From sequence record KX397373.1: 64,000 nucleotides of DNA. One strand, written 5' to 3'. Position 1 is the first letter of the stretch; each line of letters opens with the position of its first letter. Below, one piece after another: positions 12,617 through 26,989 of this stretch. Made by a program: the position numbers and the translations under genes. The notes beneath the pieces are model-generated. The model was given only the letters and a program-made list of their open reading frames with translations. It was not told the origin of the DNA and did no database searches.

Positions 12617-13258
12617 ATGGAAAAGCTCAACTATAAGCTGTTAGAGAAGCCGTGGTTCGTTCTCACGGAAGATTTCCACTTCGCCTTTACCTTACGGTCG
12701 CTTTACCGTGAAGTCGGTGGGATGGATGAGATGGTGAAATTGTCAGGCGTGTTGCCCGACAAAGAACTGTTTGTGACTGCACCAAAAGGTTTCGTAACCG
12801 ACATGGCCAGTATCCCTGAACCGCTCCAGCCTATCCTGCATCCGGATGGGCCGTGGGCGGCGGCAGCCTGTGTCCATGACCTGTTCTACCAGAAATGTTC
12901 CAGTGTGGGGGTTTATCCAACCGGTGATGCGGGTGATCTCTCCCGTGCGGTGGATAAACGGTTCGCGGACATTATGTTCCTGCGGATTATGGAAGCGCTC
13001 GGGGTTGACCCGTTTATTCGCAAGTCATTCTACGAAGCGGTTCACCAGTTTGGTTGGCCGTCATACGTGGACAACAACGCGAAAGTGCAATACAGCCACC
13101 CGGTGGAGAAAACCCTGACGTATAATCGCAACTACCTGTTCATTCGTGAGCAGTGTGAAGTGGCGATTCCGGAACACGAGCGGGTAGACCTCACCACAGG
13201 ACATTCCGTCAATGTGAAGTATTTGAACATTAAACGGGCTTTCCTGAGCCTCGATTAA
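12617..13258 (+). CDS. DUF1353-family protein
   Basis: VPKGFVTD.ASIP-like motif (APKGFVTDMASIP) ...GPW..AACVHD.FY...AD..F...M...GV matches DUF1353. Confidence 0.8.
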   Translation: MEKLNYKLLEKPWFVLTEDFHFAFTLRSLYREVGGMDEMVKLSGVLPDKELFVTAPKGFVTDMASIPEPLQPILHPDGPWAAAACVHDLFYQKCSSVGVYPTGDAGDLSRAVDKRFADIMFLRIMEALGVDPFIRKSFYEAVHQFGWPSYVDNNAKVQYSHPVEKTLTYNRNYLFIREQCEVAIPEHERVDLTTGHSVNVKYLNIKRAFLSLD

Positions 13259-13331: not shown

Positions 13332-13377
13332 AAAGAAAGAATTACCCACTCCTTTGCGGGAGTGGGTAATCTCTTTT
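13332..13377. terminator. Bidirectional intrinsic terminator between convergent genes
   Basis: ATTACCCACTCC / GGAGTGGGTAAT stem flanked by A-rich and T-rich runs. Confidence 0.8.
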
Positions 13378-13891
13378 ATTTCGCGTCGACTTTGTCTGTC
13401 GTTTCGCTTGGAGACGGGGTAATTAACACGGGTACCGATGGCTGGTCGAGGGGCCCGATGATACAACGGAAGAAGGTCATGCCGGAACCGCTGCCCGTCA
13501 GTGGGCTGACAGTTGAATAATCAAACGACGGTGAGCCTGTCAGTAATCCGTTGGTACGGTAAAAGCGTTTCCCCGACTTGGTATCGATGTTCCCGTCAAT
13601 CTTACCGGTGGCATCTTTATACAACTGCGGTGCTTCTAACTTACCACCGTCCCAGGTCGCTACCCAATTCGCCCCTACATCCATAACCGTAACGGCACGA
13701 GGGAAAACAGCGATGCTGGAAGCAACGGGTCGGTAATCAACAAATTCCGTCTCCACACCCGTACAGGTGTAGATGACCATATCGTGATTAGTGACAGGGA
13801 CAGTGGAGAACTGCCCTTTATCATCTGCGTTCATGGCACAACCTGAAAGCAACATGATAAACGCGAGCACGCACAACAAGTGCTTGGTCAT
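13376..13891 (-). CDS. Predicted lipoprotein
   Basis: N-terminal basic residue, hydrophobic stretch and LLSG-C lipobox. Confidence 0.7.
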   Translation of the reverse strand: MTKHLLCVLAFIMLLSGCAMNADDKGQFSTVPVTNHDMVIYTCTGVETEFVDYRPVASSIAVFPRAVTVMDVGANWVATWDGGKLEAPQLYKDATGKIDGNIDTKSGKRFYRTNGLLTGSPSFDYSTVSPLTGSGSGMTFFRCIIGPLDQPSVPVLITPSPSETTDKVDAK

Positions 13892-14025: not shown

Positions 14026-14550
14026 ATGGCAAAAACAGCACAAGCGCAATTTATTGCGATGTTCAACGCGGATAACACTGGTCTGGCGCAAGCACTGGTC
14101 GAAGCAGATGTTACCTTTGGCGCAGTGGCCGAATATGACCCTGCCGACGAGGCCGATACCCGCAACTCCAAAGTGACGCTGACTGCCGTTGCAGAAAGCA
14201 CGCACTTTACCGGGGAAAAGGAATTCCACTTCACCCGTCTGGCTGCAAGCATCGTTGGCGCGAAAGCAGTTACCGATGACCAGGCCGACTGGGACACCGA
14301 TGCCGAAGTCCTGGCATTCCTGAATGCTGACGTTATCACTGCCGGTAAAACGGACGATGCGTTTGCACTCAGCGAGCTGGACATTGTTCGTACCGATGGT
14401 GCGGATGATGCGAAAGTGATTACCGTCACTATCAAAGCCGGTCACCTGAAGTTCCTGCCAGGCGATGTGGCAGTCTACACCATTACGCAAGAGATCACTA
14501 AAACTGACCTCTCTACCACAAATGGTGAGCTCAACGGTTTCACAGCTTAA
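14026..14550 (+). CDS. Small acidic virion protein ending NGELNGF
   Basis: RNSKVTLTA...FTGEKEFHFTRL resembles the RNTR..L....F.G.KEFFYDRL domain. GAGGA RBS. Confidence 0.7.
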   Translation: MAKTAQAQFIAMFNADNTGLAQALVEADVTFGAVAEYDPADEADTRNSKVTLTAVAESTHFTGEKEFHFTRLAASIVGAKAVTDDQADWDTDAEVLAFLNADVITAGKTDDAFALSELDIVRTDGADDAKVITVTIKAGHLKFLPGDVAVYTITQEITKTDLSTTNGELNGFTA

Positions 14551-14632: not shown

Positions 14633-15139
14633 ATGGCTAAGTCGTTGCAAGAACTGTTTGTCGATATGATCAACGAAGTCAATCCAGATTTAGGGTTAAC
14701 GCTCAGTGACGTCACATTCGGTGCGCCTTCCGAATACACCCCTGCGGATTCAGGGGACACCCGCAATACCGTGTTGACTTTAGTGGCAAAAGATGACAGC
14801 CCGAATTTCAAGGGCAGTAAAGATTACCACTTCTTCCGCTTCAATTTCACTAACCCTGGTGGTGTCACTACCCCAACATTAACCACCGGGGATTTGATTG
14901 GGAACTGGCAGGACGATGCAAAGGTCTTGATGGTCATGAACATGATGCTGCCGAATTACAAACTGACAGCAGAAGAGATTGCCATCGAACGCGTGACCGT
15001 GGATGACACCACGTTAGATGTACGCATCACTATCGACCCCAACCATTTAAAGTGGCACGGGACATTTGTGACACGCGTAATCGACGAAGGAAAAACCAAC
15101 CTGCAATGGTTGAATCCCGAGTTGAGCGGGTTCAAATAA
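14633..15139 (+). CDS. Small virion protein, paralog of 14026
   Basis: DVTFGA..EY.PAD..DTRN..(V/L)TL.A shared with 14026; ends NPELSGFK. Confidence 0.7.
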   Translation: MAKSLQELFVDMINEVNPDLGLTLSDVTFGAPSEYTPADSGDTRNTVLTLVAKDDSPNFKGSKDYHFFRFNFTNPGGVTTPTLTTGDLIGNWQDDAKVLMVMNMMLPNYKLTAEEIAIERVTVDDTTLDVRITIDPNHLKWHGTFVTRVIDEGKTNLQWLNPELSGFK

Positions 15140-15189
15140 AAAGAAAGCGACCTACTACCCGTAAAGGTAGTAGGTCTGCTTATTTTATT
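15138..15189. terminator. Bidirectional terminator ending the minus-strand rSAM/fibre gene run
   Basis: GACCTACTACC / GGTAGTAGGTC stem with A-run to the left and T-run to the right. Confidence 0.85.
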
Positions 15190-15192
15190 CGC

Positions 15193-15861
15193 TTACAACA
15201 AGCCTTCTTCGGTCGCCACGGATTTGATACCCGTGAAGTCCTGTGCTTCGGCCAGTGTGCGAATCTTACGCTTGAGCTCCGTCATCGCTGCGTGCAGTTG
15301 CGCATCACGCTCAACAATAGCGGCCAGCACCGCTTTACACGCTGCAACGTCGAACGGGTGTTCTTCACTGCCTAAGCGGTTGTTCTGCGCATCCAGCCAA
15401 TACCCCGGCGAGGTATCGGATTGAACGTACGAGGCCAAGGACGCACGAGACTTCTCATCGGCTTGCAGCAGGATGCCCTGGAATTCGATGTTCTCGTGAC
15501 GCTGAGTTTCGTAGCGTTCCGCGATACGGGTATAGATAGGCTGAATCTCTTGGTAGAGATAGTTTACCGTCGAGGTCAAGCCTTTGCGGATTTCATCCAA
15601 CGGCAGCTCTAACACGGTTTCGATAAACTCTTTCGCCTTACGCAGCGTGAACTGGGCTTCCGGTTCACTGAGGTCGTACTCACGCAGCTTTTTGACGGCT
15701 GCTTTATCCGATACCCCGTTCAACAGATGATAATGCAGCAGGGTACAGTACCCCTGCTTGGTTTCATCGTCTTTCGCCAGAATGGTCATGTAATTACCGT
15801 GGCGGTCAATCGGGTTACCGAATTCGAAGTAACGGGCCTTTATCTCGTCATTACTAAGCAT
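15193..15861 (-). CDS. DUF4376-like tail-fibre assembly protein with a possible PqqD/RRE-like N-terminal domain
   Basis: C-terminal half FQG..LQADEKSR.SL...W.DA.N.......AI..R......H.....LK..I resembles DUF4376. AGGAG RBS. Confidence 0.65.
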   Translation of the reverse strand: MLSNDEIKARYFEFGNPIDRHGNYMTILAKDDETKQGYCTLLHYHLLNGVSDKAAVKKLREYDLSEPEAQFTLRKAKEFIETVLELPLDEIRKGLTSTVNYLYQEIQPIYTRIAERYETQRHENIEFQGILLQADEKSRASLASYVQSDTSPGYWLDAQNNRLGSEEHPFDVAACKAVLAAIVERDAQLHAAMTELKRKIRTLAEAQDFTGIKSVATEEGLL

Positions 15862-16430
15862 TCAGATTCTCCTGCTAACCCGAGGTCCATCAGCAGGCCG
15901 AAGTCAACCATCTGGAAGTGTTCGGATAATTCCTCACCCCAGATAAATTTCATCTTCTCTGCTAAGTCCCCGTTCTGTTCCTGGAAGATAAAGATTTGGT
16001 GCATTTCCTCACCAAACGAGTCGAACTGATGGTTAGAACGCAGCGCACGTACGCGCACACCGATCAAATCCGCAGCTTCCGGATTCTCCGGGTCGGCCCA
16101 GTTTAATGCCAGACCAATCAGGTTATCGGTATCCAGGTTCTGCGTAGAGCGACGCAGGATTTCGATTTTGTGGCGCGGGAATTCCGCAACACGCTGTTCG
16201 AAGCCCGGATTACGGATGGCCACCTGCTCCACAGAGTTGTGTGTTTTCTCAACCCCGTCCAGCGGCAGAATGACGTTCAGCCCGAAGCGCACACACAGAC
16301 GACGAATCTCATCAGTAAACGTGTCTGGTTCCACAATCGCGTGGATGTTGTACATGCCGTGCTTTTGCATAAACGCGGCAACAAGGTGAAGATTACGCTT
16401 CGTAAAATTGTGTATCAGCAACGACTTCAT
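15840..16430 (-). CDS. Hypothetical protein in the rSAM cluster
   Basis: 196 aa, AGGAG RBS, overlaps both neighbours. Confidence 0.7.
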   Translation of the reverse strand: MKSLLIHNFTKRNLHLVAAFMQKHGMYNIHAIVEPDTFTDEIRRLCVRFGLNVILPLDGVEKTHNSVEQVAIRNPGFEQRVAEFPRHKIEILRRSTQNLDTDNLIGLALNWADPENPEAADLIGVRVRALRSNHQFDSFGEEMHQIFIFQEQNGDLAEKMKFIWGEELSEHFQMVDFGLLMDLGLAGESECLVMTR

Positions 16431-17736
16431 TCGCTGGTGCTCCTAATTGGTTTTTCTTCTCGGCTGCTAATTTGCGATCGCGCACACAAGACACACAGTA
16501 GCACTGGGTCTTATCGTTCAGATCGGTATAACGGGTAGTACCGGTTTTCTGGTAGAAGTATTCTGCTACCAGCAGTTTGGCGGTAGTCCAGCCACACTGA
16601 CGACGCTCGGCGTGATACGCTTTGCGGTCTTCCATTTCCCCGTCACCGTTCTCGTATGACGCCGCGGCACAACTACCACACGCGTGCTTCATCGGGCAAC
16701 CCAGGCACGTTTCTGGGTAGTTGGTGTACTGCGTTTGAATTTCGTTCAACAGCTTATTGTCGTCGATATTGACAATCTCACGGCCACGCAGTTCTGCGAT
16801 AGCCTGACGTGTCGTTACCGTGGACATAAAGCGGTTACAGCCGTAAATCTTGCGGTCGAAGCCCAGGCAGGTCATGTGGGTTACGGTACCGCAGAACGGA
16901 CGCACACGCTCCGGGTTCAGACGCGTTGCTTCGTCGTCCAGGAGCTTCTGACGCCAATCCGGGTCCCAGGTTGCCATGAAGTCCAGGCCATCCGGGAAGA
17001 TGTGGGTCAGGCGGTTACGTGGGTCTTTCTCAAACCCTTTGTCGAACCAGTAGTCAATCACGTCCATCATCTGCAACGCAATCGACATTGCCATGGTGCG
17101 CGGCAGAATGTCTTCGTACGTGACGTTACCGGAAATGGTACCACCGCCAGTGACGTCCATCAGGTGCTTCATGGACTCGGCGTATTTCGGCAGGGTCTCA
17201 GACGTAAAGGTGGCTTTGATACCCAGTTCCAGGATACCGACCGATTTCAGGTAGTTGTAACCACGCATCGCTTTTTCGTACGACCCTTCACGGGTCGTGG
17301 TGAAGATACGATAGCGGTCGTGCACTTCCGGCAGACCATCGATAGACACACCGATGGACAGTTTGTCACGCCAGCGTTCGATAATCTCGCGGTTCAGCGG
17401 CTTGTCGAATAACGTGCCGTTCGTCGAGATGGAGAAGATAACATCACGGTTATCACGCTTCGCCAGTTCTTCGGCCGTTTCAAATACGGCTTTCAGAATC
17501 TTCGGCTGCATCATGGGTTCACCACCGATGATATCGATGATAACTTCCACGTTCTTCAAATGACGGTCACGGTCGAAACACGCATGAATGAAGTCCACTG
17601 CATCATCGGCTTTATTGTTACGCGGGTATTTACGCTCGTAGCAATATTCACAGTCGAGGTTACAGGAGAGGTTGGTCACCACCTGATAGGTTTTGGTGAT
17701 TTTGGGCTCTTGGGCCGGTGCTTTGGTATCACGCAT
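16393..17736 (-). CDS. Radical SAM/SPASM-domain peptide maturase
   Basis: CNLDCEYC (CX3CX2C); IIGGEP; SISTNGTL; SIDG. SPASM-like cysteines: CGTV..C..DRKIYGCNRF and CLGCPMKHACGSCAA...C. Confidence 0.92.
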   Translation of the reverse strand: MRDTKAPAQEPKITKTYQVVTNLSCNLDCEYCYERKYPRNNKADDAVDFIHACFDRDRHLKNVEVIIDIIGGEPMMQPKILKAVFETAEELAKRDNRDVIFSISTNGTLFDKPLNREIIERWRDKLSIGVSIDGLPEVHDRYRIFTTTREGSYEKAMRGYNYLKSVGILELGIKATFTSETLPKYAESMKHLMDVTGGGTISGNVTYEDILPRTMAMSIALQMMDVIDYWFDKGFEKDPRNRLTHIFPDGLDFMATWDPDWRQKLLDDEATRLNPERVRPFCGTVTHMTCLGFDRKIYGCNRFMSTVTTRQAIAELRGREIVNIDDNKLLNEIQTQYTNYPETCLGCPMKHACGSCAAASYENGDGEMEDRKAYHAERRQCGWTTAKLLVAEYFYQKTGTTRYTDLNDKTQCYCVSCVRDRKLAAEKKNQLGAPANEVVADTQFYEA

Positions 17737-18634
17737 TGCGATTTAACCCCGCTTGTATTACACGATTCATGTACTGGTAAGCGTCATAGCCAATGACTTC
17801 GGCCAGACGGTTACAGCCCGAGTTCAACACATCAATGGCATTGTCAGACTGGTCAAACGTGGCATCGGATTTTACCCACACCAGATTGCTACAGTCGTCA
17901 CAGTGCTGCTTGAAGAACTTGTTGATGCTGAGCGTTTGGTGGAACCCGTTCAGCGTGTTCAGCTCGGTCAACTGGTCGTGCATTTTGTTGTACCCGTACA
18001 TAAAGTTCATGACGAGATCCTGGTTAAGCGGCTTAGGCATGAAGTTATCAAACATCACACGGTAACCGTTTAAGCGGTAATGGTACAACGACTCGTGGAG
18101 TTTCAACAGGTCGTAGAACCAGTGCTTCGGTGCTAACTGGGCACGGGTAATCACCGACCATAACGTGATGTTGTCCAGCGCGTCAAACACCTCGAAAGCA
18201 TCGTAGCGACGCTCCTCAGCGATACGCAGCAACGGACGTTCGGATTCTGCATAGCCGTCAAAGGAGACGAAGATGCGATCCATTTGCTCGAGCACCGGCA
18301 GCTGGGCCGGGGTCAGTCGCAGACCGTTGGTGTACATTTCATGCTGTAGGTGCGGATAACGTTCCTTCAACTCAGCCATAAAGTCCTGGATTTTATTGAA
18401 CGCCAACAGGGGTTCACCGCCCGTCCAGTTAATTTGCTGAATAGTAGGATGCGCTTCCAGCGTTTCAAACAGCTTCTCTCTTTGGATGTCGCGCGCACTG
18501 TCCTTGACATCCATATACCCAACACCGCCACAGAAGCTACAATCGAGATTGCACTTCGAGGTGGTGACAATCGACAGCTCCATCGGAGTTGACGAAGGGT
18601 CGCGACGAATAGCCGACACAGCTTCTTCACTCAT
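17729..18634 (-). CDS. Second, shorter radical SAM protein
   Basis: CNLDCSFC; WTGGEPLL; YTNG; VSFDG. Only CDDC..C at the C-terminus. GGAG RBS. Confidence 0.88.
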   Translation of the reverse strand: MSEEAVSAIRRDPSSTPMELSIVTTSKCNLDCSFCGGVGYMDVKDSARDIQREKLFETLEAHPTIQQINWTGGEPLLAFNKIQDFMAELKERYPHLQHEMYTNGLRLTPAQLPVLEQMDRIFVSFDGYAESERPLLRIAEERRYDAFEVFDALDNITLWSVITRAQLAPKHWFYDLLKLHESLYHYRLNGYRVMFDNFMPKPLNQDLVMNFMYGYNKMHDQLTELNTLNGFHQTLSINKFFKQHCDDCSNLVWVKSDATFDQSDNAIDVLNSGCNRLAEVIGYDAYQYMNRVIQAGLNRNA

Positions 18635-18650
18635 TGCAGATTTACTCCAG

Positions 18651-19538
18651 TTATTCGAAAGTCAGCTTGAACAGCGGGTCATCTTTGATGTCCACACCCG
18701 TCTTTAACACGAACGGGTCGTTATAAGCATCAAGGATCTGGTTCAGAATAGCCTGACGGTCATTCACACGCCGTAAGTCATCTAACGTGACCGTGCGAGC
18801 ATGGAAGGCAGACACTGCGGTTTTCTCTTCAGCCGTCAGTTCTACTTTCGTCAGCAGGAACGCTACCAGTTTGTTCAGGTCTGCTTCGGTTGCAGGTGCT
18901 TCACCGAACTGCGTCTGCACCAGGTACTGCATCCACGGTTTGCGGATACGCTTGGTGATGTCGTGTTCGTCAAAGATTGCTTCGAATTGTTTCTCAGCCG
19001 GGTTCCAGACAAACTTGTAGCTGTAGGCCAGCAGGTCAAGCATGTTGGTAATGCCGTGCTTTTCAAAGCCAACGATAGGGTAATACTCTTCGACACCGGT
19101 ATACTGCTCAGTGTCTTGCGTTACCTGCGTAAACCAGCCAGGCATAGACCCCATGTAGTCCCAGCTCCATTCACGGCGGGCCATCGGTTTCAGGCCACTT
19201 TCGGTAAACGGAATCAGGAACATTTCCAGGTCAACCACCTGGTTCAATACCGCATCGCTCAGGAAGTATTTCCCATCCACTAAGCGACCTTTCACATCTT
19301 GCTCACCGGCCGTGATGTGAATGTGCTGCACGCTACGACCCGCTAACGTATAATCGGCTTCCACCGTATAGTTCTTCGGGTTAGCCAGCTCACGTCCACG
19401 AACCTTTGGCCACTCCCCTGGCAACTGACTGATCAGTCGCACCTGGTCTAACAGGTGGAATTTCACACTGTCGTACAGGCTGATATGCAGTGGGAAGTTT
19501 TGCGTTGTCTTAAACGCAAGGTGTAGATCGTTCTTCAT
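18651..19538 (-). CDS. Hypothetical protein between the precursors and the rSAM genes
   Basis: 295 aa, AGGGG RBS, short gaps to neighbours. Confidence 0.75.
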   Translation of the reverse strand: MKNDLHLAFKTTQNFPLHISLYDSVKFHLLDQVRLISQLPGEWPKVRGRELANPKNYTVEADYTLAGRSVQHIHITAGEQDVKGRLVDGKYFLSDAVLNQVVDLEMFLIPFTESGLKPMARREWSWDYMGSMPGWFTQVTQDTEQYTGVEEYYPIVGFEKHGITNMLDLLAYSYKFVWNPAEKQFEAIFDEHDITKRIRKPWMQYLVQTQFGEAPATEADLNKLVAFLLTKVELTAEEKTAVSAFHARTVTLDDLRRVNDRQAILNQILDAYNDPFVLKTGVDIKDDPLFKLTFE

Positions 19539-19548
19539 TTAAGTCCCC

Positions 19549-19755
19549 TTATCGGTTCCCCGCTCCGTGACTACAACCACCGCTACATGTCCAGCTACAA
19601 GACCCGCCGCAGTTATAGTGCGATAACGGTAACCCAGCAAGGTTGTTAGTCGTACTAACCGTCCCCTGGGTTGCGATGAACGAGTTAGCGTCCGCCGTCT
19701 TGATATAGCCTTCCACTTGCACCATTTTGTCACGGATGTTTTTGAGTGAAATCAC
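19549..19755 (-). CDS. Short Cys-rich precursor-like peptide P3 (4 Cys)
   Basis: GTG start after GGGGG RBS. ISLKNIRDKM leader and HYNCGGSCSWTCSGGC core are homologous to P1 and P2. Confidence 0.8.
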   Translation of the reverse strand: MISLKNIRDKMVQVEGYIKTADANSFIATQGTVSTTNNLAGLPLSHYNCGGSCSWTCSGGCSHGAGNR

Positions 19756-19799: not shown

Positions 19800-20198
19800 T
19801 TACCGCGTTGGCCCGGAACAACCGGAACAACCAGAGCAGCTTGAGGAACATGAAGAAGAACAACCTGTTGAACACGTTCCTGAACAGCCGTTTGCACAGC
19901 CTCCTGAACATGCACCCGAACAGCCCGTACAGGTCGAAGAACAACCCGAAGTACAGCTGGACGAACAACTTGCCCCACACGTTCCCGACGCAGAACCTGA
20001 GCACCCGCCGGAACACGACGAACATGTCCAGCTACAGGTACCGCCACAATCATAATGCGCACGCGGCTGGCCGCCAAACAACGTCGAGTTGTTCGTGGCT
20101 TTATTGCGAATATAGGTCTGCACCCCTGCCGCGTTTTTCAATGCGGTATTATCAATACTATTCAGACGGTTCTGAATATCTTTTAGGTTGATAGCCAT
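19800..20198 (-). CDS. CX2-3-repeat precursor-like peptide P2 (132 aa, 20 Cys)
   Basis: AGGAG RBS, ATG 20198. MAINLKDIQNRL leader; HYDCGGTCSWTC then a Ser/Gly/Thr-Cys repeat. Confidence 0.88.
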   Translation of the reverse strand: MAINLKDIQNRLNSIDNTALKNAAGVQTYIRNKATNNSTLFGGQPRAHYDCGGTCSWTCSSCSGGCSGSASGTCGASCSSSCTSGCSSTCTGCSGACSGGCANGCSGTCSTGCSSSCSSSCSGCSGCSGPTR

Positions 20199-20209: not shown

Positions 20210-20593
20210 CTACGGCCCAGAGCAGCCAGAACAGCCCGTACAGCTCGATGAGCACGACCCCGAGCACCCGCTACATTTACCGGAGCACCCGCCGGAGCAA
20301 CTGCCTGAACAACCTGAGCAACCCGAACACCCGGTAGAACAACCACCCGTACAGCTGCCGGTACACGTCGACGTACACGTTCCCGAACAACTGGTACAAC
20401 TTGCCGAACACCCGTTAGAGCACGACCAGCTACACGTACCACCACAATCTAATTGACCCGGTGTCCAACCCGCAAAGCGCTCTTGCGCGTTATACGCTTG
20501 CGAGGCAACTTGCGCATCAACGCGAGGTCCGGTGGCGACATTGGCTTCCACTATTTGCAGGCGGTCGCGTATGTTTTTAAGTGAGATTGCCAT
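20210..20593 (-). CDS. CX2-3-repeat precursor-like peptide P1 (127 aa, 21 Cys)
   Basis: AAGGA RBS. MAISLKNIRDRL leader; DCGGTCSWSC then a Ser/Gly/Thr-Cys repeat. Confidence 0.88.
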   Translation of the reverse strand: MAISLKNIRDRLQIVEANVATGPRVDAQVASQAYNAQERFAGWTPGQLDCGGTCSWSCSNGCSASCTSCSGTCTSTCTGSCTGGCSTGCSGCSGCSGSCSGGCSGKCSGCSGSCSSSCTGCSGCSGP

Positions 20594-20659: not shown

Positions 20660-21859
20660 TTAGCGTGTACCAGCTTCTGCTTGTACGTCGTCGCGAGTCG
20701 TGAGACTGTTGTTGACGTGAACCGCAGCTTGCACCACACCACCGTACGTCTTGTGGAGGTAGTTCGGGTGTGGGTTGTCCGCTGCAACGTGGTTCGCCAG
20801 GTTCTGGTTTGCCTGCGAGATAGCGTTGGTATTGTTCGTGATGCGGGTGTTCTGCGCGGTAATCTGGGCTTGCAGGTTATCAATCTTCTGTTGGAAGTCT
20901 TGACCTTGCGATTCCAAATCACCGACACGCTGCGTTAACGCGTTCAGGGCAGACTGCAAATCATTGACAGCTTTCTGCAACTGCAACACCAGGGAGTTGA
21001 GGTTCGCCAAGGCGAGCGACATCTTCTGGTAGTTCTGCGCCACGGTGTTCAGCTGGTCATTCCATGCCACCAGAGATTGCACCACTGCATCGATACGGGC
21101 TCCCAGTGCAGTATCGGCGGTTTTCAGTGAAGCAATTTCTTTTAAGGTGTCATCAATCTGCGTTTGAACCGCGGCAATCAGTGCACGAATCTCGGTTTCT
21201 GTCAGACCGTTGATCTGGTGAATATTGAGACTGTGGACGTTGCCTTGTGCATTAACGTGCGCATTCAACGCATCAAGGAAGTCTTGTTTCAGACCGTCGA
21301 TGATACCTTTGATTTGTTCGAGCTGTACCGCCGACCCGGAGTTAATCGCGTCTTTGATGCCCGACAGTACCGTGATGATAAACTCGAACCCGTAGATGTC
21401 ACCCACGTCTTTAAACGTAGGTGCTGACGGGAACGTATCCGGAACGTTACGCAAGTCTTTGAAATCAACCGTGCGGTCTTCCAGTTTCAGCTCTGCAATC
21501 GCCTGAGTAATGGCAACAACGTTTGCTGACTGTGGACCACCGATGACCTGAGCCGAGATAGTGATGTCGGTTGGAATAGCAGAGTTGGTGACCACCACCC
21601 CCATCAGGATTTCTTGGTTCTTGGTAAGCTTCTCGTACGCCGGGTGAGCGAAGATCAGCTCATAGTCCGTCCCACGTTTATAGAAGGTACCGGGTTTGTT
21701 CGTTGCAGCCAGACGAAACGACTCCGCGTAAAACGGCCCGTCTGGGAATGCAAAGGCCCGGTTAACCTTACCGGAACCTAACGTAACGCGTCGTGTGACT
21801 GCGTTCGACGTCAGTGTCCCCTTTAGGTCAAACGGGTACTGATATACAATAGCGGCCAT
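20660..21859 (-). CDS. Tail fibre/baseplate-associated protein with a long C-terminal coiled coil
   Basis: AAGGAG RBS, ATG 21859. YPFD..G N-terminus, GPFY, G.DY.L, DLRNVPDTFP, heptad region, H....NPH motif. Confidence 0.75.
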   Translation of the reverse strand: MAAIVYQYPFDLKGTLTSNAVTRRVTLGSGKVNRAFAFPDGPFYAESFRLAATNKPGTFYKRGTDYELIFAHPAYEKLTKNQEILMGVVVTNSAIPTDITISAQVIGGPQSANVVAITQAIAELKLEDRTVDFKDLRNVPDTFPSAPTFKDVGDIYGFEFIITVLSGIKDAINSGSAVQLEQIKGIIDGLKQDFLDALNAHVNAQGNVHSLNIHQINGLTETEIRALIAAVQTQIDDTLKEIASLKTADTALGARIDAVVQSLVAWNDQLNTVAQNYQKMSLALANLNSLVLQLQKAVNDLQSALNALTQRVGDLESQGQDFQQKIDNLQAQITAQNTRITNNTNAISQANQNLANHVAADNPHPNYLHKTYGGVVQAAVHVNNSLTTRDDVQAEAGTR

Positions 21860-21902: not shown

Positions 21903-24900
21903 TTAAGACTTGAACATAAGATTGACCTGAATCTCGTCCAAGTCAACCAGCGAGTTACCTCCAGCGTATTCACAGGCCACTGTCAGAGTCAGCGTTCCGG
22001 AATTGTAACTGGCAACAAACGGAGGGTTCAGCGCATCTTTCCCGGTGTTCAGTACCACCGCCGGTTCAGAAGGCAGATTCGGGATGACCAGCTCACGCGC
22101 TACCCGCACCACACCAAAGCTCGATGTCAAATCGCTCAATGCATACAGCATGAACGGGGTATCAACATCGGTCTGTCGGAAGACGGTGCCGGTACTGTCG
22201 TCCACCACCTGTATCGCCAACATCTTCGTCTTCAGTGTTTGATACTGAGCCGCGGTCAGTTGCGCAGACAAAGTGGCCACAAACTCCACCCCAGCCGGAA
22301 GTCCTGAGCCGGTGACATTCACGAGGTCAGGACCCGTTGCAAACGGTATCTCCGCAGCGGACGGATTCACCCCGGACGTCAGGCAATACCAGAACATCGG
22401 GATACCGTTCGGTACCGCGTAACGCAGGCTAATCTGGCGAGCCGGATCACCAATATTCCCCGGCACCGTAAAACGCAACCTGGCCACCGCCATGTAGGTT
22501 TCCCCGGCGACGTGCGGCACAGACTCAGCACCGATCCACTTCATGTTAAAACTGGCCGCGCGGGCATTGTCTGCCGTTACGGCGGCCGTCTCAACCGGAG
22601 GTTTCAACCAGAAGCGCTCAGAGACATTCACCAGGTCTTGCCACCGCGTGGCACCAAACCCGCTATAGCGTTTCTGGATAGGGAGCGCAGGACGAGTTTG
22701 TCGTGTAATCCCTTTGGACAGCTCTTGTCCATCGGCATACCCGGCAGTGCCCGAGCCCGGTGTCGCTAACGGCACTTTGCTCAGTTGCGCCATTGACCCG
22801 ATACGGGCTTCACGGGCAGCGGACACATCGTGACGGTTAGCGACCGCAGCGTGCTCTACCAACTGCTTGACGTTACCGAAACGTTTCACCTTATCAAACG
22901 TCGACAGGGTAATGCGTTCGCTGTCCGTCACAACCGTACCGATATACAGCTGGGTATCGCTGTCCGGTTCCTGTTGCTCCAGCAGGCGGTATTGCGGAAC
23001 CCCGTTGACCAGCGCAGCGTGCATGTAGAACGTGCGGTTCTGGTAGTTAGTTGGGTACAAGTCACGGATATCGGAACTGTATTCGCCCAACGTGTAGTAC
23101 GCTGAACCGAATCGCAGCAACTCCTGTTCCGTGATGTACAGCGCCCAACCTTCCGCAGTCTTCGTCCCGGCGAGGATGTTATCCTCAGGTGTCCCGGTAC
23201 GGAAATTGCGGACGGTGTTCTTGTAGACACTGGCGGCAAAGTACAACCCATTAAACAACCATTTGGTCATCCCGATATAACCGGTCTCTGGCATCACCAC
23301 AATGTCGACTTCATTCGAAGACGGGTTCATGGAAATGAGCGAGTTCGTCCAGCCCCCGAAAGTCGTATCACACGACAACAGGAAAGAACGCCAGCGACTG
23401 TCTCCAACCACCCCCATTCGGTACAACGCCCCCAGGAACAACACATAGCCGTCGTCACGCTGAATCAACTTCGAGTTGGTGTACTGGTCGTGTGCCAAAG
23501 AGATACCGGCATCCGGGTCGCGGTAGTTCTCGACCACCGGTGACAACATCGTGGTACCCAACTGCACGTTCCCGTTGGTCACCGACATCGGCAGTTTCCA
23601 CACCCAGGTAAAGGTGTGGGTTACCAGCCGACTGGTGTTGTCCCACATGCGCACAGACGCCATGGCGAATGCCGCATTTAACCCACCGACATCGAACACT
23701 TGCAGCTTGGTTAATGTTTGCACGACCAACTCGTCGTTCCACACCGGCACCGCTGCTGCAATCGCCGCATTCAATGCTGCCCAGGTCGCATCCGATACCG
23801 TGATACGATCTGCGGTAAAGGTGGACGTCCCGGTCACGGTCTTGTACGGGAAAGACCCTGCCTCGGTAATAACACGACCGTTGATGTACAGTTGGCCATC
23901 TTTCCAGATATTCGGCGAAGACAGCAAGGTTCGGTAGTCAGGGTCGGTCACCGCGATACGCGCATTGTCTGGCCCCCAGCCCGGATAGTCCGGGAAGTAG
24001 CGAGACGATTGGGTATAACGGAGCTGGATAACCTCTGCGGCCACATTGAGGTGTCGCATCAATACCGTGTTGGCAGTCCCACCGAGGTGGATAAGGCCAC
24101 GCATGTATTGCTGGTACACCGACCCTACTGCACCACCCACGGTGGCGTTTGCGGTTTCGATAAGCGTTGTGCTGCTACCGAGTAAATCGTACAAACTCGT
24201 GTTCGGTGCTGGACTGATACCGATACGTGGCGGGTTGTTTGAATAAACGTCACAGAAGGAGTTCATCAACAACCCTGAGGACAGGAAGACCCTGTTCGTC
24301 AGCGCCACACCTTTGTTACGGTTGGTCACCGAGGGCAGAGGCTGGGCATTTGGGAACTCAATCTTGTTCTCGGTTAATGCGATCGGGAAGATTTTGTTCT
24401 CAAGCGTCAATAACCAGTTCTCCGTGTTAAGGGAGAGTGATACCGACCAGGCATCTGTCCACTGTGCCGAGGTATTATCGGAGAAGTACCCGTGCATCTC
24501 TGCACGCAACCGCACCATGTTCACCTGTGAGGCTGAATAAAACGAAGGGAGGTAGTTAACCGCATTCCCGTTCGGCCAACGGGCTTTCCCCTCCGCGGTA
24601 CGGTAGGCCAGGAACTTGGTTGTGGCATCGTCGCCATAACCGCCTTCTTGTACAATCAGCGCCACGTCGCCGTCTTTGTCTGGGTAATTGAAATTAATTA
24701 CCGGGATAGTCGAACTGTTTTTACTGCGCAGTTCGCTCAGACTGATACTCCAACCGCCAACAGTAAAGCGGGTGTTGTTGACAATAGACATCAACACAAC
24801 CACACGACCTTTGGTCACCGTCACTGTCGAATACTGACGATAATCTTTAAAGGCGAGGGTACTGCCGTTCGACCGGACACAGTCGGGCAGAGTGATCTGG

Positions 24901-26933
24901 TACACGTCGTTGTGGGTCGCGTAGTTCATCGTCCCGTTGAACAACACCAGATAGAACAACCCGTCGCTCGCCTCAAAGATACCGGCATCAGAATCCCCCA
25001 CCACTACACGCGTCAATACCACACCAGGGAATTTACTCATCCCAGCTGGATGGTACGGGAACGTCGTGGGGTAGTTCTTCAGGAAATTATTAGACCCCCC
25101 GATAGACGCATACCAGTAATAGACCCGGCGGGTGTCTTCTGGCCCATCGCTGCCGTTACGCAGCACATAGACGTTACCGCCTTCGTAACGGGCAACCGCC
25201 CAGTTATTGGAACGATCGTAACCAAAGCCCGCGTAGTTACTGACGGTAGGAATAGGCAGGAAACTCGGGTTACCGTATTCCGCGCCCCCGACTGTCCAGG
25301 ATGGCAGTAAAGTGTTCACCTTCTCATTCAGCGACTTGATAGACTGGTCGATAGCGTACCCCTGTTTCGAGGTCACCATCTTATCATCGGTCGAGTCAAT
25401 CGCATCCCACAGTTTCACCAGACCACTGACAGACGTTGACCCGTACGGGACGTTGTCCAAATCAGCGAGGGTATGCGTGTGGTCTGTTTTTGCCTTACTC
25501 GCCAATGCCGCAGTTAGTGCTTTAGTAACCGGCTTCTCTAACGGGGCAGTGTTGTCCATTTTGTCGATACCGAAATCGGTTTTCGTCAAGGTCAACACTT
25601 GTTTCCCATCAGACCCTTTCACAAACTTCTTGCCGTTGATGCTGTAAGTGTCATCAACGTACAAGTCCAGTTTGTTTTTCAGGTCATTCACCGCCTTCTG
25701 CGAAATAGCAGCACCGGTGGCTACTGAGTTCGAGATATTGGTGATAGAGAACAGACCCGCTACCGCCGTCGTTGCGGTAGGCAGTTCCACGTTCATGTAC
25801 ACCCGGTTGGTGTCTTTCCCGCTACCGTAAATCTTGAGTGTGTCGCTCGATTTAAAGTAGGCGTTCGCCGGTAACAGTTTCACCGAGGTCAGATACATCC
25901 CGACCATCTCCGGCGTCACCAGATACACAGAGTTAAACACCGGGGCCAAGACATCGGCTGCTGCACCGGAGTGTACCCAGAGGGTATTCAGACCCGCAGA
26001 GAACTCTACCCCGATACCAGGGTCGTTGTTGTCCTGGTCAGCTTTCAAGACCAGCGGTTTCGGCGAGGTAATAATGAACTTCTCGCCCTTCATGCTGATC
26101 AGGTGACCTGCGGTGGTCTGGAAAGTAATCGCGTCGTTGTTCAGAACACGCAGACGTCCCAGTAAATCCCCCAGGGTGTTGTCCATCAACAGGTCAACGT
26201 GCGCCTGTGAGATGCCCGAGGTGGACATCAACGTCACCAGCTCTGCCAAGGTACGGCCGAAGGCTTTCGTCGCGTCTACGGCCTTCCCAACGACCGGGAG
26301 CGCCCCTACGTCAGCGGTGGTGTAACCGTGGGCATTACTTTTCAGGTGGTGCTGGTACATCTCCTGCTCGAACACGGTGTTACCGTTCTGGTAAATCATG
26401 TCGGTCAGTTCAGTAAAGGCACCGTCCAGCTCACTGGCACGCTCGAGGATACCCAGACGAATATCTTCCAGCGCTTTCACCACTTCATCACGCAGAATCG
26501 CCTCATCCAGATTCTCTGGTGGGTCGATAGGTGAGATAACCGGGGCATACTTCATTAACTCTGACCAATCCACGTTACGCGGATCAGGCAAGTCGGTTTT
26601 CACCAGGTACTTACCAATCTCTGACTGAGGCAGGCGATATTGACGCCCCACGGCCAGGAACTCGTAATCCACTTCGGAGGCAGTCAGTAGGATGAAGCCC
26701 CCGTAGATTTGGTCTTGCTCAGCTTCGGCCAGCTCTTTGAAATAGTAACCGAGATAGTAATCCAGACCCTCAATCAGGGTGCGTTTACCGCCGGGTGCTA
26801 TTGCATCCTTAACGGTGAGTTTCAGACCAATGCGGTAGAAAGGCCCTTCGGCAGGAATCACCGCATTGTATTTGTTCGGGTACGTTGCGGTCTTAAGCGT
26901 ACCGTTAAACTGCGCCGCATCTTCTCTCGGCAT
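21903..26933 (-). CDS. Large tail fibre protein (about 1676 aa)
   Basis: AGGAG RBS, ATG 26933. Fibre-repeat motifs ATTAVAGL, STSVSGLVKL, HTHTLADL, GIDKMDNT..LEKPV. Confidence 0.8.
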   Translation of the reverse strand: MPREDAAQFNGTLKTATYPNKYNAVIPAEGPFYRIGLKLTVKDAIAPGGKRTLIEGLDYYLGYYFKELAEAEQDQIYGGFILLTASEVDYEFLAVGRQYRLPQSEIGKYLVKTDLPDPRNVDWSELMKYAPVISPIDPPENLDEAILRDEVVKALEDIRLGILERASELDGAFTELTDMIYQNGNTVFEQEMYQHHLKSNAHGYTTADVGALPVVGKAVDATKAFGRTLAELVTLMSTSGISQAHVDLLMDNTLGDLLGRLRVLNNDAITFQTTAGHLISMKGEKFIITSPKPLVLKADQDNNDPGIGVEFSAGLNTLWVHSGAAADVLAPVFNSVYLVTPEMVGMYLTSVKLLPANAYFKSSDTLKIYGSGKDTNRVYMNVELPTATTAVAGLFSITNISNSVATGAAISQKAVNDLKNKLDLYVDDTYSINGKKFVKGSDGKQVLTLTKTDFGIDKMDNTAPLEKPVTKALTAALASKAKTDHTHTLADLDNVPYGSTSVSGLVKLWDAIDSTDDKMVTSKQGYAIDQSIKSLNEKVNTLLPSWTVGGAEYGNPSFLPIPTVSNYAGFGYDRSNNWAVARYEGGNVYVLRNGSDGPEDTRRVYYWYASIGGSNNFLKNYPTTFPYHPAGMSKFPGVVLTRVVVGDSDAGIFEASDGLFYLVLFNGTMNYATHNDVYQITLPDCVRSNGSTLAFKDYRQYSTVTVTKGRVVVLMSIVNNTRFTVGGWSISLSELRSKNSSTIPVINFNYPDKDGDVALIVQEGGYGDDATTKFLAYRTAEGKARWPNGNAVNYLPSFYSASQVNMVRLRAEMHGYFSDNTSAQWTDAWSVSLSLNTENWLLTLENKIFPIALTENKIEFPNAQPLPSVTNRNKGVALTNRVFLSSGLLMNSFCDVYSNNPPRIGISPAPNTSLYDLLGSSTTLIETANATVGGAVGSVYQQYMRGLIHLGGTANTVLMRHLNVAAEVIQLRYTQSSRYFPDYPGWGPDNARIAVTDPDYRTLLSSPNIWKDGQLYINGRVITEAGSFPYKTVTGTSTFTADRITVSDATWAALNAAIAAAVPVWNDELVVQTLTKLQVFDVGGLNAAFAMASVRMWDNTSRLVTHTFTWVWKLPMSVTNGNVQLGTTMLSPVVENYRDPDAGISLAHDQYTNSKLIQRDDGYVLFLGALYRMGVVGDSRWRSFLLSCDTTFGGWTNSLISMNPSSNEVDIVVMPETGYIGMTKWLFNGLYFAASVYKNTVRNFRTGTPEDNILAGTKTAEGWALYITEQELLRFGSAYYTLGEYSSDIRDLYPTNYQNRTFYMHAALVNGVPQYRLLEQQEPDSDTQLYIGTVVTDSERITLSTFDKVKRFGNVKQLVEHAAVANRHDVSAAREARIGSMAQLSKVPLATPGSGTAGYADGQELSKGITRQTRPALPIQKRYSGFGATRWQDLVNVSERFWLKPPVETAAVTADNARAASFNMKWIGAESVPHVAGETYMAVARLRFTVPGNIGDPARQISLRYAVPNGIPMFWYCLTSGVNPSAAEIPFATGPDLVNVTGSGLPAGVEFVATLSAQLTAAQYQTLKTKMLAIQVVDDSTGTVFRQTDVDTPFMLYALSDLTSSFGVVRVARELVIPNLPSEPAVVLNTGKDALNPPFVASYNSGTLTLTVACEYAGGNSLVDLDEIQVNLMFKS

Positions 26934-26952
26934 TGCAAAGACTCCTACTTTG

Positions 26953-26989
26953 AAATAAAACGGATACCCCACCCCGGAGGGTGGGGTTA
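26953..26989 (-). terminator. Terminator-like hairpin between fibre genes
   Basis: ACCCCACCC / GGGTGGGGT stem with a T-rich tail on the minus strand. Confidence 0.6.

Follow-up and report, generated by a model that had tools for sequence, protein, structure and literature searches.

Genomic context of gp178

The DNA analysed here, referred to as the window, is a stretch of 64,000 nucleotides from sequence record KX397373.1 (window coordinate = KX397373.1 coordinate - 124000), which belongs to Erwinia phage vB_EamM_Stratton, a 244-kb jumbo phage of the genus Erskinevirus within the SPN3US-like group. It includes the gene STRATTON_178 (gp178, 15193..15861, minus strand), labelled as 'hypothetical protein' in GenBank, for which the original prediction had proposed a fusion of a PqqD-like domain, i.e., a recognition element (RRE) for leaders of peptides that are made by ribosomes and modified after translation (RiPPs), with a tail-fibre chaperone of the DUF4376 family. 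The open reading frame (ORF) is real and lies exactly at this position, as is evident from the ORF list, the GenBank annotation, phrog_8169, which covers the protein at full length (E = 5e-105), and numerous homologues. It starts with an ATG at 15861, as read from the sequence, and encodes 222 aa plus stop; a Shine-Dalgarno sequence AGGAGA (15868..15873, minus strand), likewise read from the sequence, is found 6 nt 5' of this start codon within the 3' end of gp179. Full-length homologues are present in 62 phage records (Erwinia, Salmonella, Escherichia, Cronobacter and Proteus jumbo phages) at identities from 100% down to 32%, with 50% to the SPN3US homologue gp161, and in about 20-30 metagenomic clusters as well. 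When searching with hidden Markov models (HMMs) of both gp178 domains, no second copy of either was detected within the 64-kb window.

On the minus strand, the genes are arranged in the order gp189, gp188, gp187, gp186, gp185, gp184, gp183, gp182, gp181, gp180, gp179 and gp178, followed by a terminator-like hairpin at 15149..15176 (both strands), which was found by terminator scan and sequence inspection between gp178 and the convergent plus-strand gene gp177. Having a perfect 11-12-bp stem and T-runs on either strand, the hairpin is a candidate bidirectional intrinsic terminator that would mark gp178 as the final gene of the minus-strand unit. Upstream of gp178, the genes gp179 (15840..16430, minus strand; 196 aa, phrog_7988), gp180 (16393..17736, minus strand; 447 aa), gp181 (17729..18634, minus strand; 301 aa) and gp182 (18651..19538, minus strand; 295 aa, phrog_8030) form a radical S-adenosylmethionine (SAM) cassette, in which gp180 resembles maturases of the radical SAM/SPASM type, as indicated by Pfam, NCBIfam and an alignment with CteB, and gp181 is a second radical SAM protein. 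The overlaps amount to 8 nt for gp181/gp180, 38 nt for gp180/gp179 and 22 nt for gp179/gp178, and, judging from the sequence, gp178 is translationally coupled to the radical SAM block. The cassette is preceded at its 5' side by gp186 (20660..21859, minus strand), annotated as a fibre-like virion structural protein (SPN3US homologue gp167), and gp187 (21903..26972, minus strand), a giant baseplate/tail-fibre candidate according to annotation and its SPN3US homologue gp168, both transcribed in the direction of gp178. Genes gp187-gp189 encode giant proteins and correspond in SPN3US to the virion 'baseplate/tail fibre candidates' gp168-170, of which gp168 is a tail protein.

The C-terminal DUF4376 domain

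Two domains can be deduced for gp178, an N-terminal one of residues 1-97 (15571..15861, minus strand) and a C-terminal one of residues 98-222 (15196..15570, minus strand). As far as the latter is concerned, the original prediction was borne out, and profile searches confirm the C-terminal half as a DUF4376 domain. PF14301 scores 37.6 bits (E = 3.2e-9) on residues 115-208 (window 15238-15519) and model positions 8-103 of 106, above the gathering cut-off of 25 bits, and is also found in 26 of the 31 sequences that make up the gp178 family alignment. The SPN3US homologue is already named 'DUF4376 domain-containing protein' in RefSeq. Moreover, in a profile-profile comparison with hhalign, the family is homologous to the validated chaperone V22 gp27 (probability 90.4%, E = 1.4e-6, 110 columns, 81-210 on 76-185).

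The AlphaFold2 (AF2) model of full-length gp178 calculated from the 31-sequence alignment (mean predicted local distance difference test score, pLDDT, of 91.3) shows for the C-terminal domain a long helix (98-121), a beta-hairpin (125-132) and helices at 136-148, 172-205 and 209-218. The predicted template modelling score (pTM) of only 0.62 suggests two domains whose mutual orientation is loose. Searching the predicted viral structures of BFVD with Foldseek gave the Kwan orthologue as top match (E = 1e-14), followed by dozens of DUF4376 proteins (98-377 aa long) whose alignments span about 100-140 columns with root-mean-square deviations of 2-4 A, albeit at modest E-values of 3e-3 and weaker. 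Full-length gp178 retrieved only long-helix noise from the PDB by Foldseek, and the sequence matches of gp178 or the family profile to PDB entries (a NADH dehydrogenase subunit, a designed helical protein, flagellin) are due to chance.

The predicted helical body with its beta-hairpin agrees with the description of DUF4376 chaperones as an 'alpha-helical body with beta-hairpin tentacle' resembling the intramolecular chaperone domains of fibres (PMC10579305). V22 gp27 acts as an intermolecular chaperone, the receptor-binding fibre gp26 being functional only if co-expressed with gp27, which is not part of the final complex (PMC7289586). Likewise, Tfa proteins combine a variable N-terminal fibre-binding domain with a conserved DUF4376 C-terminus driving multimerization (PMC7882524). 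V22 gp27 and A5 gp9 share with gp178 the C-terminal position of DUF4376 (92-184 of 195 and 138-231 of 239 residues, respectively), a similar size (195-239 versus 222 aa) and, judging from SPN3US gp161, a non-virion character, while the N-terminal 75-95 residues of V22 gp27 are unrelated to gp178 (no alignment). From the layout of gp27, gp9 and Tfa it therefore follows that an N-terminal part of 75-140 aa without homology is the normal architecture and that gp178 is no special fusion, contrary to what had been proposed, as a variable N-terminal domain ahead of a C-terminal DUF4376 is standard in this chaperone class. The Tfa protein of phage Mu (gene U product) corresponds to the logic proposed below for gp178, since its N-terminal domain attaches to the fibre's C-terminal region and its C-terminus multimerizes (PMC7882524). 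A sequence or fold match between gp178 and a solved Tfa structure was not obtained, and the relation is drawn from the literature. In contrast to TfaMu, which remains attached to the fibre, the gp178 homologue of SPN3US is missing from virions.

The N-terminal domain and its comparison with RREs

Residues 1-97 are predicted to form an all-alpha bundle. Both AF2 models, i.e., of the full-length protein and of this domain alone (pLDDT 91.0, pTM 0.83), place helices at 4-12, 35-47 (kinked), 52-61, 66-83 and 88-96, with a variable loop at 13-34, and neither contains a beta-sheet, only single-residue bridges at positions 18 and 24. Invariant across the 31 sequences are I7, G22, H43, Y44, G49, F79 and L84. 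When the first 100 residues alone were used as query, a mere 19 proteins were found among 1.84 billion representatives, nearly all of them having 213-224 aa and the same two-domain layout as gp178. Three of the candidates (P0023, P0027 and P0035, 130-135 aa), considered as free-standing N-terminal domains, diverge or stop past the domain and look like truncated or broken gene calls, and the 498-aa P0036 matches merely via a repeated 'ND-x-DR-x-G'-type motif and was rejected as a homologue. According to the models, the N-terminal domain is a genuine, conserved and separately folding unit of about 97 aa. As its matches are almost confined to one two-domain architecture, it does not appear to be a mobile module and is known from the gp178 family only.

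The search for a recognition protein acting in trans, on which the original prediction was based, is reasonable. The cluster motif of gp180 begins near residue 25 and its alignment with the thioether-forming maturase CteB (5WGG) starts only from CteB residue 103, and therefore gp180 has no built-in RRE, lacking the N-terminal extension of about 100 aa that holds it in CteB and PapB (residues 1-86 in the latter; PMC12715619). It has accordingly been considered that the N-terminal domain is a divergent PqqD-like RRE that binds the leaders of gp183-185 for the RRE-less gp180 and is fused to a DUF4376 chaperone delivering the product to the fibre. In favour of this assumption, one can also quote the translational coupling of gp178 to the radical SAM genes, the size of the domain of about 90 aa and its occurrence in one cluster with a radical SAM/SPASM maturase. 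In addition, the predicted succession of a loop or hairpin and three consecutive helices of about 13, 10 and 18 residues, similar in length to those of RREs, loosely recalls the helical half of the RRE fold. Being the better conserved half of gp178, as detailed below, the domain further shows what would be expected of a partner of conserved leaders or enzymes.

RREs fold as a winged helix-turn-helix consisting of a three-stranded antiparallel sheet and three helices. Such a sheet is absent from the gp178 models, and it is in the stretch of about 24-38, where the strands would have to fall, that the family is most variable and richest in indels; fitting the PqqD pattern given with the original prediction to gp178 already requires indels. 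PF05402 (PqqD) gave no match at E <= 10, neither with the N-terminal domain alone nor with any of the 31 family members. Pfam as a whole offered no family at E <= 10 for the N-terminal half of gp178, NCBIfam did not match the protein, and the PDB held nothing meaningful by sequence for gp178 or the family profile. The weak Pfam matches to LEM, NrtR_WHD, DEK_C, RecX_HTH1 and Get5_N, each in only 1-2 of the 31 members at E >= 0.004, are regarded as noise. At the structural level, in the Foldseek search of the N-terminal domain against 350,542 PDB chains the lowest E was 1.5, and the probability never exceeded 0.12; among the best 50 of 55 matches were assorted helix-turn-helix and homeodomain-like fragments, and none was of the PqqD, LynD, NisB, CteB or SuiB type or any other RRE-bearing entry. 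Hence, the AlphaFold and Foldseek comparison suggested for verifying a PqqD fold returned a confident model speaking against it.

It also speaks in favour of a divergent RRE that genuine RREs are often missed by the PqqD HMM. Seven bacterial radical SAM/SPASM maturases distantly related to gp180 and bearing N-terminal extensions of 88-128 aa at the RRE position served as control set. One of these extensions (P0149), a probable RRE, indeed matches PqqD only weakly (E = 0.046). Four of the seven detect one another with hhalign probabilities of 88-100%, whereas for the profile of the gp178 N-terminal domain the highest probability with any of the seven was 0.9%, which does not surpass the value of the DUF4376 domain, run as a control. 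While RREs are widespread and recombine among enzymes, the N-terminal domain is found in one protein family only. In none of the tests did the PqqD likeness seen by eye rise above chance, and the RRE features examined are not supported by either sequence profiles or models, so that we consider an RRE in gp178 to be very unlikely. The earlier observation is partly confirmed, with the ORF, the two domains and DUF4376 holding and the PqqD likeness failing.

The radical SAM cassette and its cysteine-rich tip proteins

The nearest NCBIfam models of gp180 are the PapB ranthipeptide maturase (E = 1e-38) and TIGR04115 (E = 7e-35), the latter defined as 'radical SAM peptide maturase, CXXX-repeat target family', both below cut-off. 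For gp179 and gp182, no match was found in Pfam, NCBIfam or PDB. The presumed substrates are encoded upstream of gp182 by three tandem paralogues on the minus strand, gp183 (19549-19755), gp184 (19800-20198) and gp185 (20210-20593), which had been denoted as peptides P1-P3 in the original prediction. They possess a common N-terminal region of about 55 aa (MAI-S/N-LK...) and a 'CGGxCSWxCS' motif, to which gp184 and gp185 add CxxxC-repeat tails of 70-80 aa; gp184 weakly matches the Cys-repeat target models TIGR04114 and TIGR04117. The N-terminal region is kept in 59 phage records at 39-100% identity, often unannotated. In the distant metagenomic relative L011, both a short form, ending just past the motif, and long forms are kept. 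At 144053-144220 of the SPN3US genome (L005, JN641803), a gp185-like N-terminal region is present without any annotation, and the nearby annotated gp166 (143409-143744), whose translation is rich in Val, Ala and Arg, seems to be a GC-rich Cys-repeat gene that was called in the wrong frame. The same kind of miscall is seen in L011 and in another relative (L012), and in many relatives the Cys-repeat genes are left without annotation.

A relative of gp180 with 36% identity is located in the tail module of a 167-kb phage-like contig (L007; ENA ERZ27314234 k141_864900) of a different phage type than Stratton, having a GpJ-like tip protein. There, a 258-aa protein (L007:6682-7458) shows tail-fibre-type repeats (Pfam PTR, E = 3e-4) and ends in 'CSGCSWTCTTNCTGRC...', thus bearing a CxxxC tip with the sequence 'CSGCSWTC...' that matches the tip of gp185 (BLASTP E = 2e-8) and, weakly, also the target models TIGR04114/TIGR04117. 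The gene is followed at its 3' side by a gp182-like gene (E = 7e-10) and three radical SAM genes. Since gp182-like genes accompany the cassette even in this phage, gp182 is a candidate substrate-recognition partner. A relative of gp178 was found neither in the L007 cassette nor in a second contig with the order radical SAM, radical SAM, 196-aa protein and DUF1353. A 305-aa protein ending the fibre module of L007 appears chaperone-like by eye; it gave no DUF4376 and no hhalign match and was dismissed.

A bacterial counterpart with a large protein in place of the 'peptide' is represented by a Margulisbacteria contig (L010; JGI 3300042643), where a 662-aa ORF (L010:3886-5874) consisting mostly of CxxxC repeats adjoins a TIGR04115-like maturase (273 bits) and a 123-aa TIGR04116-like accessory protein. 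Considering this repeat protein together with the fibre tip of L007, the CxxxC repeat would therefore be a protein tip or domain and not a small secreted RiPP of the classical kind; in phages, it would be a fibre tip. What these systems have in common as conserved element is the beginning of the tip and not an N-terminal leader, which further lowers the prospects of a leader-binding RRE in gp178, as does the existence of related radical SAM cassettes without any gp178 relative. The occurrence of a fibre with CxxxC tip beside radical SAM genes in L007 also suggests that radical SAM-modified fibre tips are a wider phage feature.

The phage cassette shares with the bacterial CXXX-repeat systems the affinity of gp180 to TIGR04115 and PapB and the weak matches of gp184 and the L007 tip to the target models, although all scores of the phage proteins remain below the curated cut-offs. 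The TIGR04116-like accessory is without counterpart among gp178, gp179 and gp182, none of which matches this model in NCBIfam or the L010 protein in hhalign and BLASTP comparisons. Also in contrast to the bacterial systems, the phage cassette is part of a tail-fibre operon, and its last gene belongs to the DUF4376 chaperone class. The physical link between two systems, modified peptides on the one hand and fibres on the other, that the original prediction had expected is therefore to be seen differently. It stands at the gene level, given the overlaps and the kept gene order, but the two systems seem to be a single one, as the peptides look like fibre tips. By and large, the earlier interpretation is partly supported, in that its chaperone half stands, as does the genetic link with the radical SAM genes, and the RRE fails.

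Synteny, virion content and alternative functions

The order of the cassette is kept in SPN3US as gp161-gp168 and also in the metagenomic relatives L004, L011 and L012, where the gp178-like protein is about 28-35% identical and the radical SAM protein about 66% over its C-terminal part. The arrangement is the same in all relatives seen. In every one of them, a gp179-like gene precedes the gp178-like gene and overlaps both it and the radical SAM gene. Homologues of gp178 and gp180 occur in identical numbers of phage records by organism name (62 each); the 62 genomes all belong to a single, almost completely syntenic clade of SPN3US-like jumbo phages. Within this clade, identities range from 61 to 100% for gp180 versus 32 to 100% for gp178. 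The virion proteome of SPN3US, comprising 86 proteins, includes gp157, gp160 and gp167-173, whereas gp161, the homologue of gp178, and gp162-166 are absent (PMC5694885, with the proteins present given in Supplementary Table 1). The absence of gp161 fits a non-structural role in assembly or maturation.

The always joint occurrence of gp179-like and gp178-like genes, the overlapping of the genes gp181, gp180, gp179 and gp178 and the joint absence of gp161 and gp162-165 from virions would also be compatible with gp178 being a non-catalytic scaffold, whose N-terminal domain docks gp179, gp180, gp181 or gp182 and whose DUF4376 helices only oligomerize. The stronger conservation of the N-terminal domain is in line with this as well, considering the highly conserved gp180 (61-100%). 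However, by its DUF4376 domain gp178 is related to a validated fibre chaperone, and we know of no DUF4376 protein acting as enzyme scaffold. Bacterial CXXX-repeat systems employ a TIGR04116-like accessory unrelated to gp178, gp179 and gp182, and radical SAM genes elsewhere do without gp178 relatives. We therefore regard a scaffold function as possible but not probable.

Alternatively, gp178 might be the chaperone of the large upstream fibres gp186 and gp187-189 without any functional tie to the radical SAM enzymes, its position merely reflecting inherited gene order. This would suit the fact that all 62 genomes belong to one syntenic clade and that gp167-170, the SPN3US homologues, occur in virions as abundant tail-fibre candidates. 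In addition, gp178 diverges fast (50% identity to SPN3US), similarly to the fibre candidate gp168 (44%, SPN3US versus PhiEaH2). Classic chaperone genes, however, directly follow their fibre gene, whereas gp178 is parted from gp186 by gp179-gp185, and gp178 overlaps gp179 and is coupled with the radical SAM genes even in relatives of about 30% identity. An exclusive service to the large fibres is accordingly judged unlikely.

Neighbouring genes beyond the terminator

On the other side of the hairpin, the window contains further genes. The plus-strand gene gp174 (12617-13258) encodes a DUF1353 protein assigned to phrog_1158 'tail assembly chaperone'. In the metagenomic relatives L003, L004 and L011, a DUF1353 gene is located directly 3' of the gp178-like gene on the same strand, and its opposite-strand position in Stratton points to a local inversion or rearrangement. 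The minus-strand gene gp175 (13376-13891; 171 aa, phrog_9559) is wedged between structural genes and encodes a possible phage lipoprotein, as its N-terminal hydrophobic stretch is followed by a cysteine ('...LLSGC'). Convergent with gp178 are the tandem paralogues gp176 (14026-14550, plus strand) and gp177 (14633-15139, plus strand) of family DUF7941. Their SPN3US homologue gp160 (paralogue family B) is among the most abundant head proteins with more than 300 copies; in distant relatives, gp176 and gp177 are not found at this position.

Proposed role of gp178

Taking the homology of its C-terminal domain, the predicted fold, the gene position and the virion data together, we propose that gp178 acts as an intermolecular chaperone in tail-fibre assembly, belonging to the Tfa/DUF4376 class, and is not an RRE fusion, its clients most likely being gp183-185 or else neighbouring fibres, and estimate the probability of this explanation at roughly 0.55. 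The analysis shows which domains gp178 has, its homology to a validated chaperone, its lack of RRE features, the coupling and conserved order of the genes and the absence of the homologue from the SPN3US virion proteome. What we infer is the chaperone activity of gp178, the identity of its clients and the domain contacting them. The gene is the last one of a late tail operon that also comprises fibre candidates, tip proteins and radical SAM enzymes, and it is translationally coupled to this operon. As in other members of the class, its DUF4376 domain, with helical body and beta-hairpin, would multimerize and cap the C-terminal end of a nascent fibre-like client, and the N-terminal domain would supply the specificity for the latter. 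Due to the position of gp178 in, and its coupling to, the late tail operon, gp183-185 are the most likely clients, their Cys-rich tips presumably receiving cross-links from gp180 and gp181. By itself, gp178 would not become part of the virion.

Several findings, however, weigh against this explanation. With a mean pairwise identity of 44.7% within the gp178 family, the N-terminal domain is better conserved than the DUF4376 domain (33.9%), as holds for 97% of the 378 pairs, which is the reverse of the rule of a variable N-terminus and a conserved C-terminus described for these chaperones. Such a pattern would also fit docking onto conserved enzyme machinery. Moreover, no solved chaperone structure was among the PDB matches of full-length gp178 by Foldseek. 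While the V22 gp27 gene is located directly 3' of its fibre gene, gp178 follows the radical SAM block, and the four maturation genes gp179-gp182 part it from the Cys-rich tip and fibre genes, unlike in the classic cases. As radical SAM cassettes without gp178 relative are present in L007 and the second contig, gp178 is not obligatory for the radical SAM chemistry. Finally, the co-occurrence of gp178 and gp180 is not independent evidence of a functional connection because all 62 genomes form one syntenic clade.

The conservation of the N-terminal domain would suit a conserved partner, be it the invariant tip motif, the N-terminal regions of gp183-185 or the enzymes, and thus keeps alive not only the scaffold function discussed above but also the notion that the domain is a recognition module other than an RRE, by which gp178 couples radical SAM cross-linking to fibre assembly. 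In the latter case, the domain would bind either the conserved beginning of the tip, '(H)Y-x-C-G-x-C-S-W-x-C', or the N-terminal region of gp183-185 and keep the client in place for gp180 and gp181, with its capping and trimerization left to the DUF4376 domain. We would give this only a modest chance; if true, gp178 would provide a chaperone-borne RRE substitute, and the system would be the first described case of radical SAM-modified phage fibre tips. A description of radical SAM enzymes acting on Cys-rich phage fibre tips was not found in the searchable literature.

With the assembly chaperone as preferred explanation, the 'hypothetical protein' of 62 jumbo phages can be re-annotated as a fibre assembly chaperone of the DUF4376/Tfa type whose N-terminal domain is new. 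For gp178 alone, this is a routine gain in annotation, and the idea of an RRE can be dropped. Of broader value is the cassette, where RRE-less radical SAM/SPASM enzymes are encoded beside small CxxxC-tip proteins, with the same tip being present on the fibre of an unrelated phage. If these tips are cross-linked and gp178 assembles them, the result would be a post-translationally 'stapled' phage fibre.

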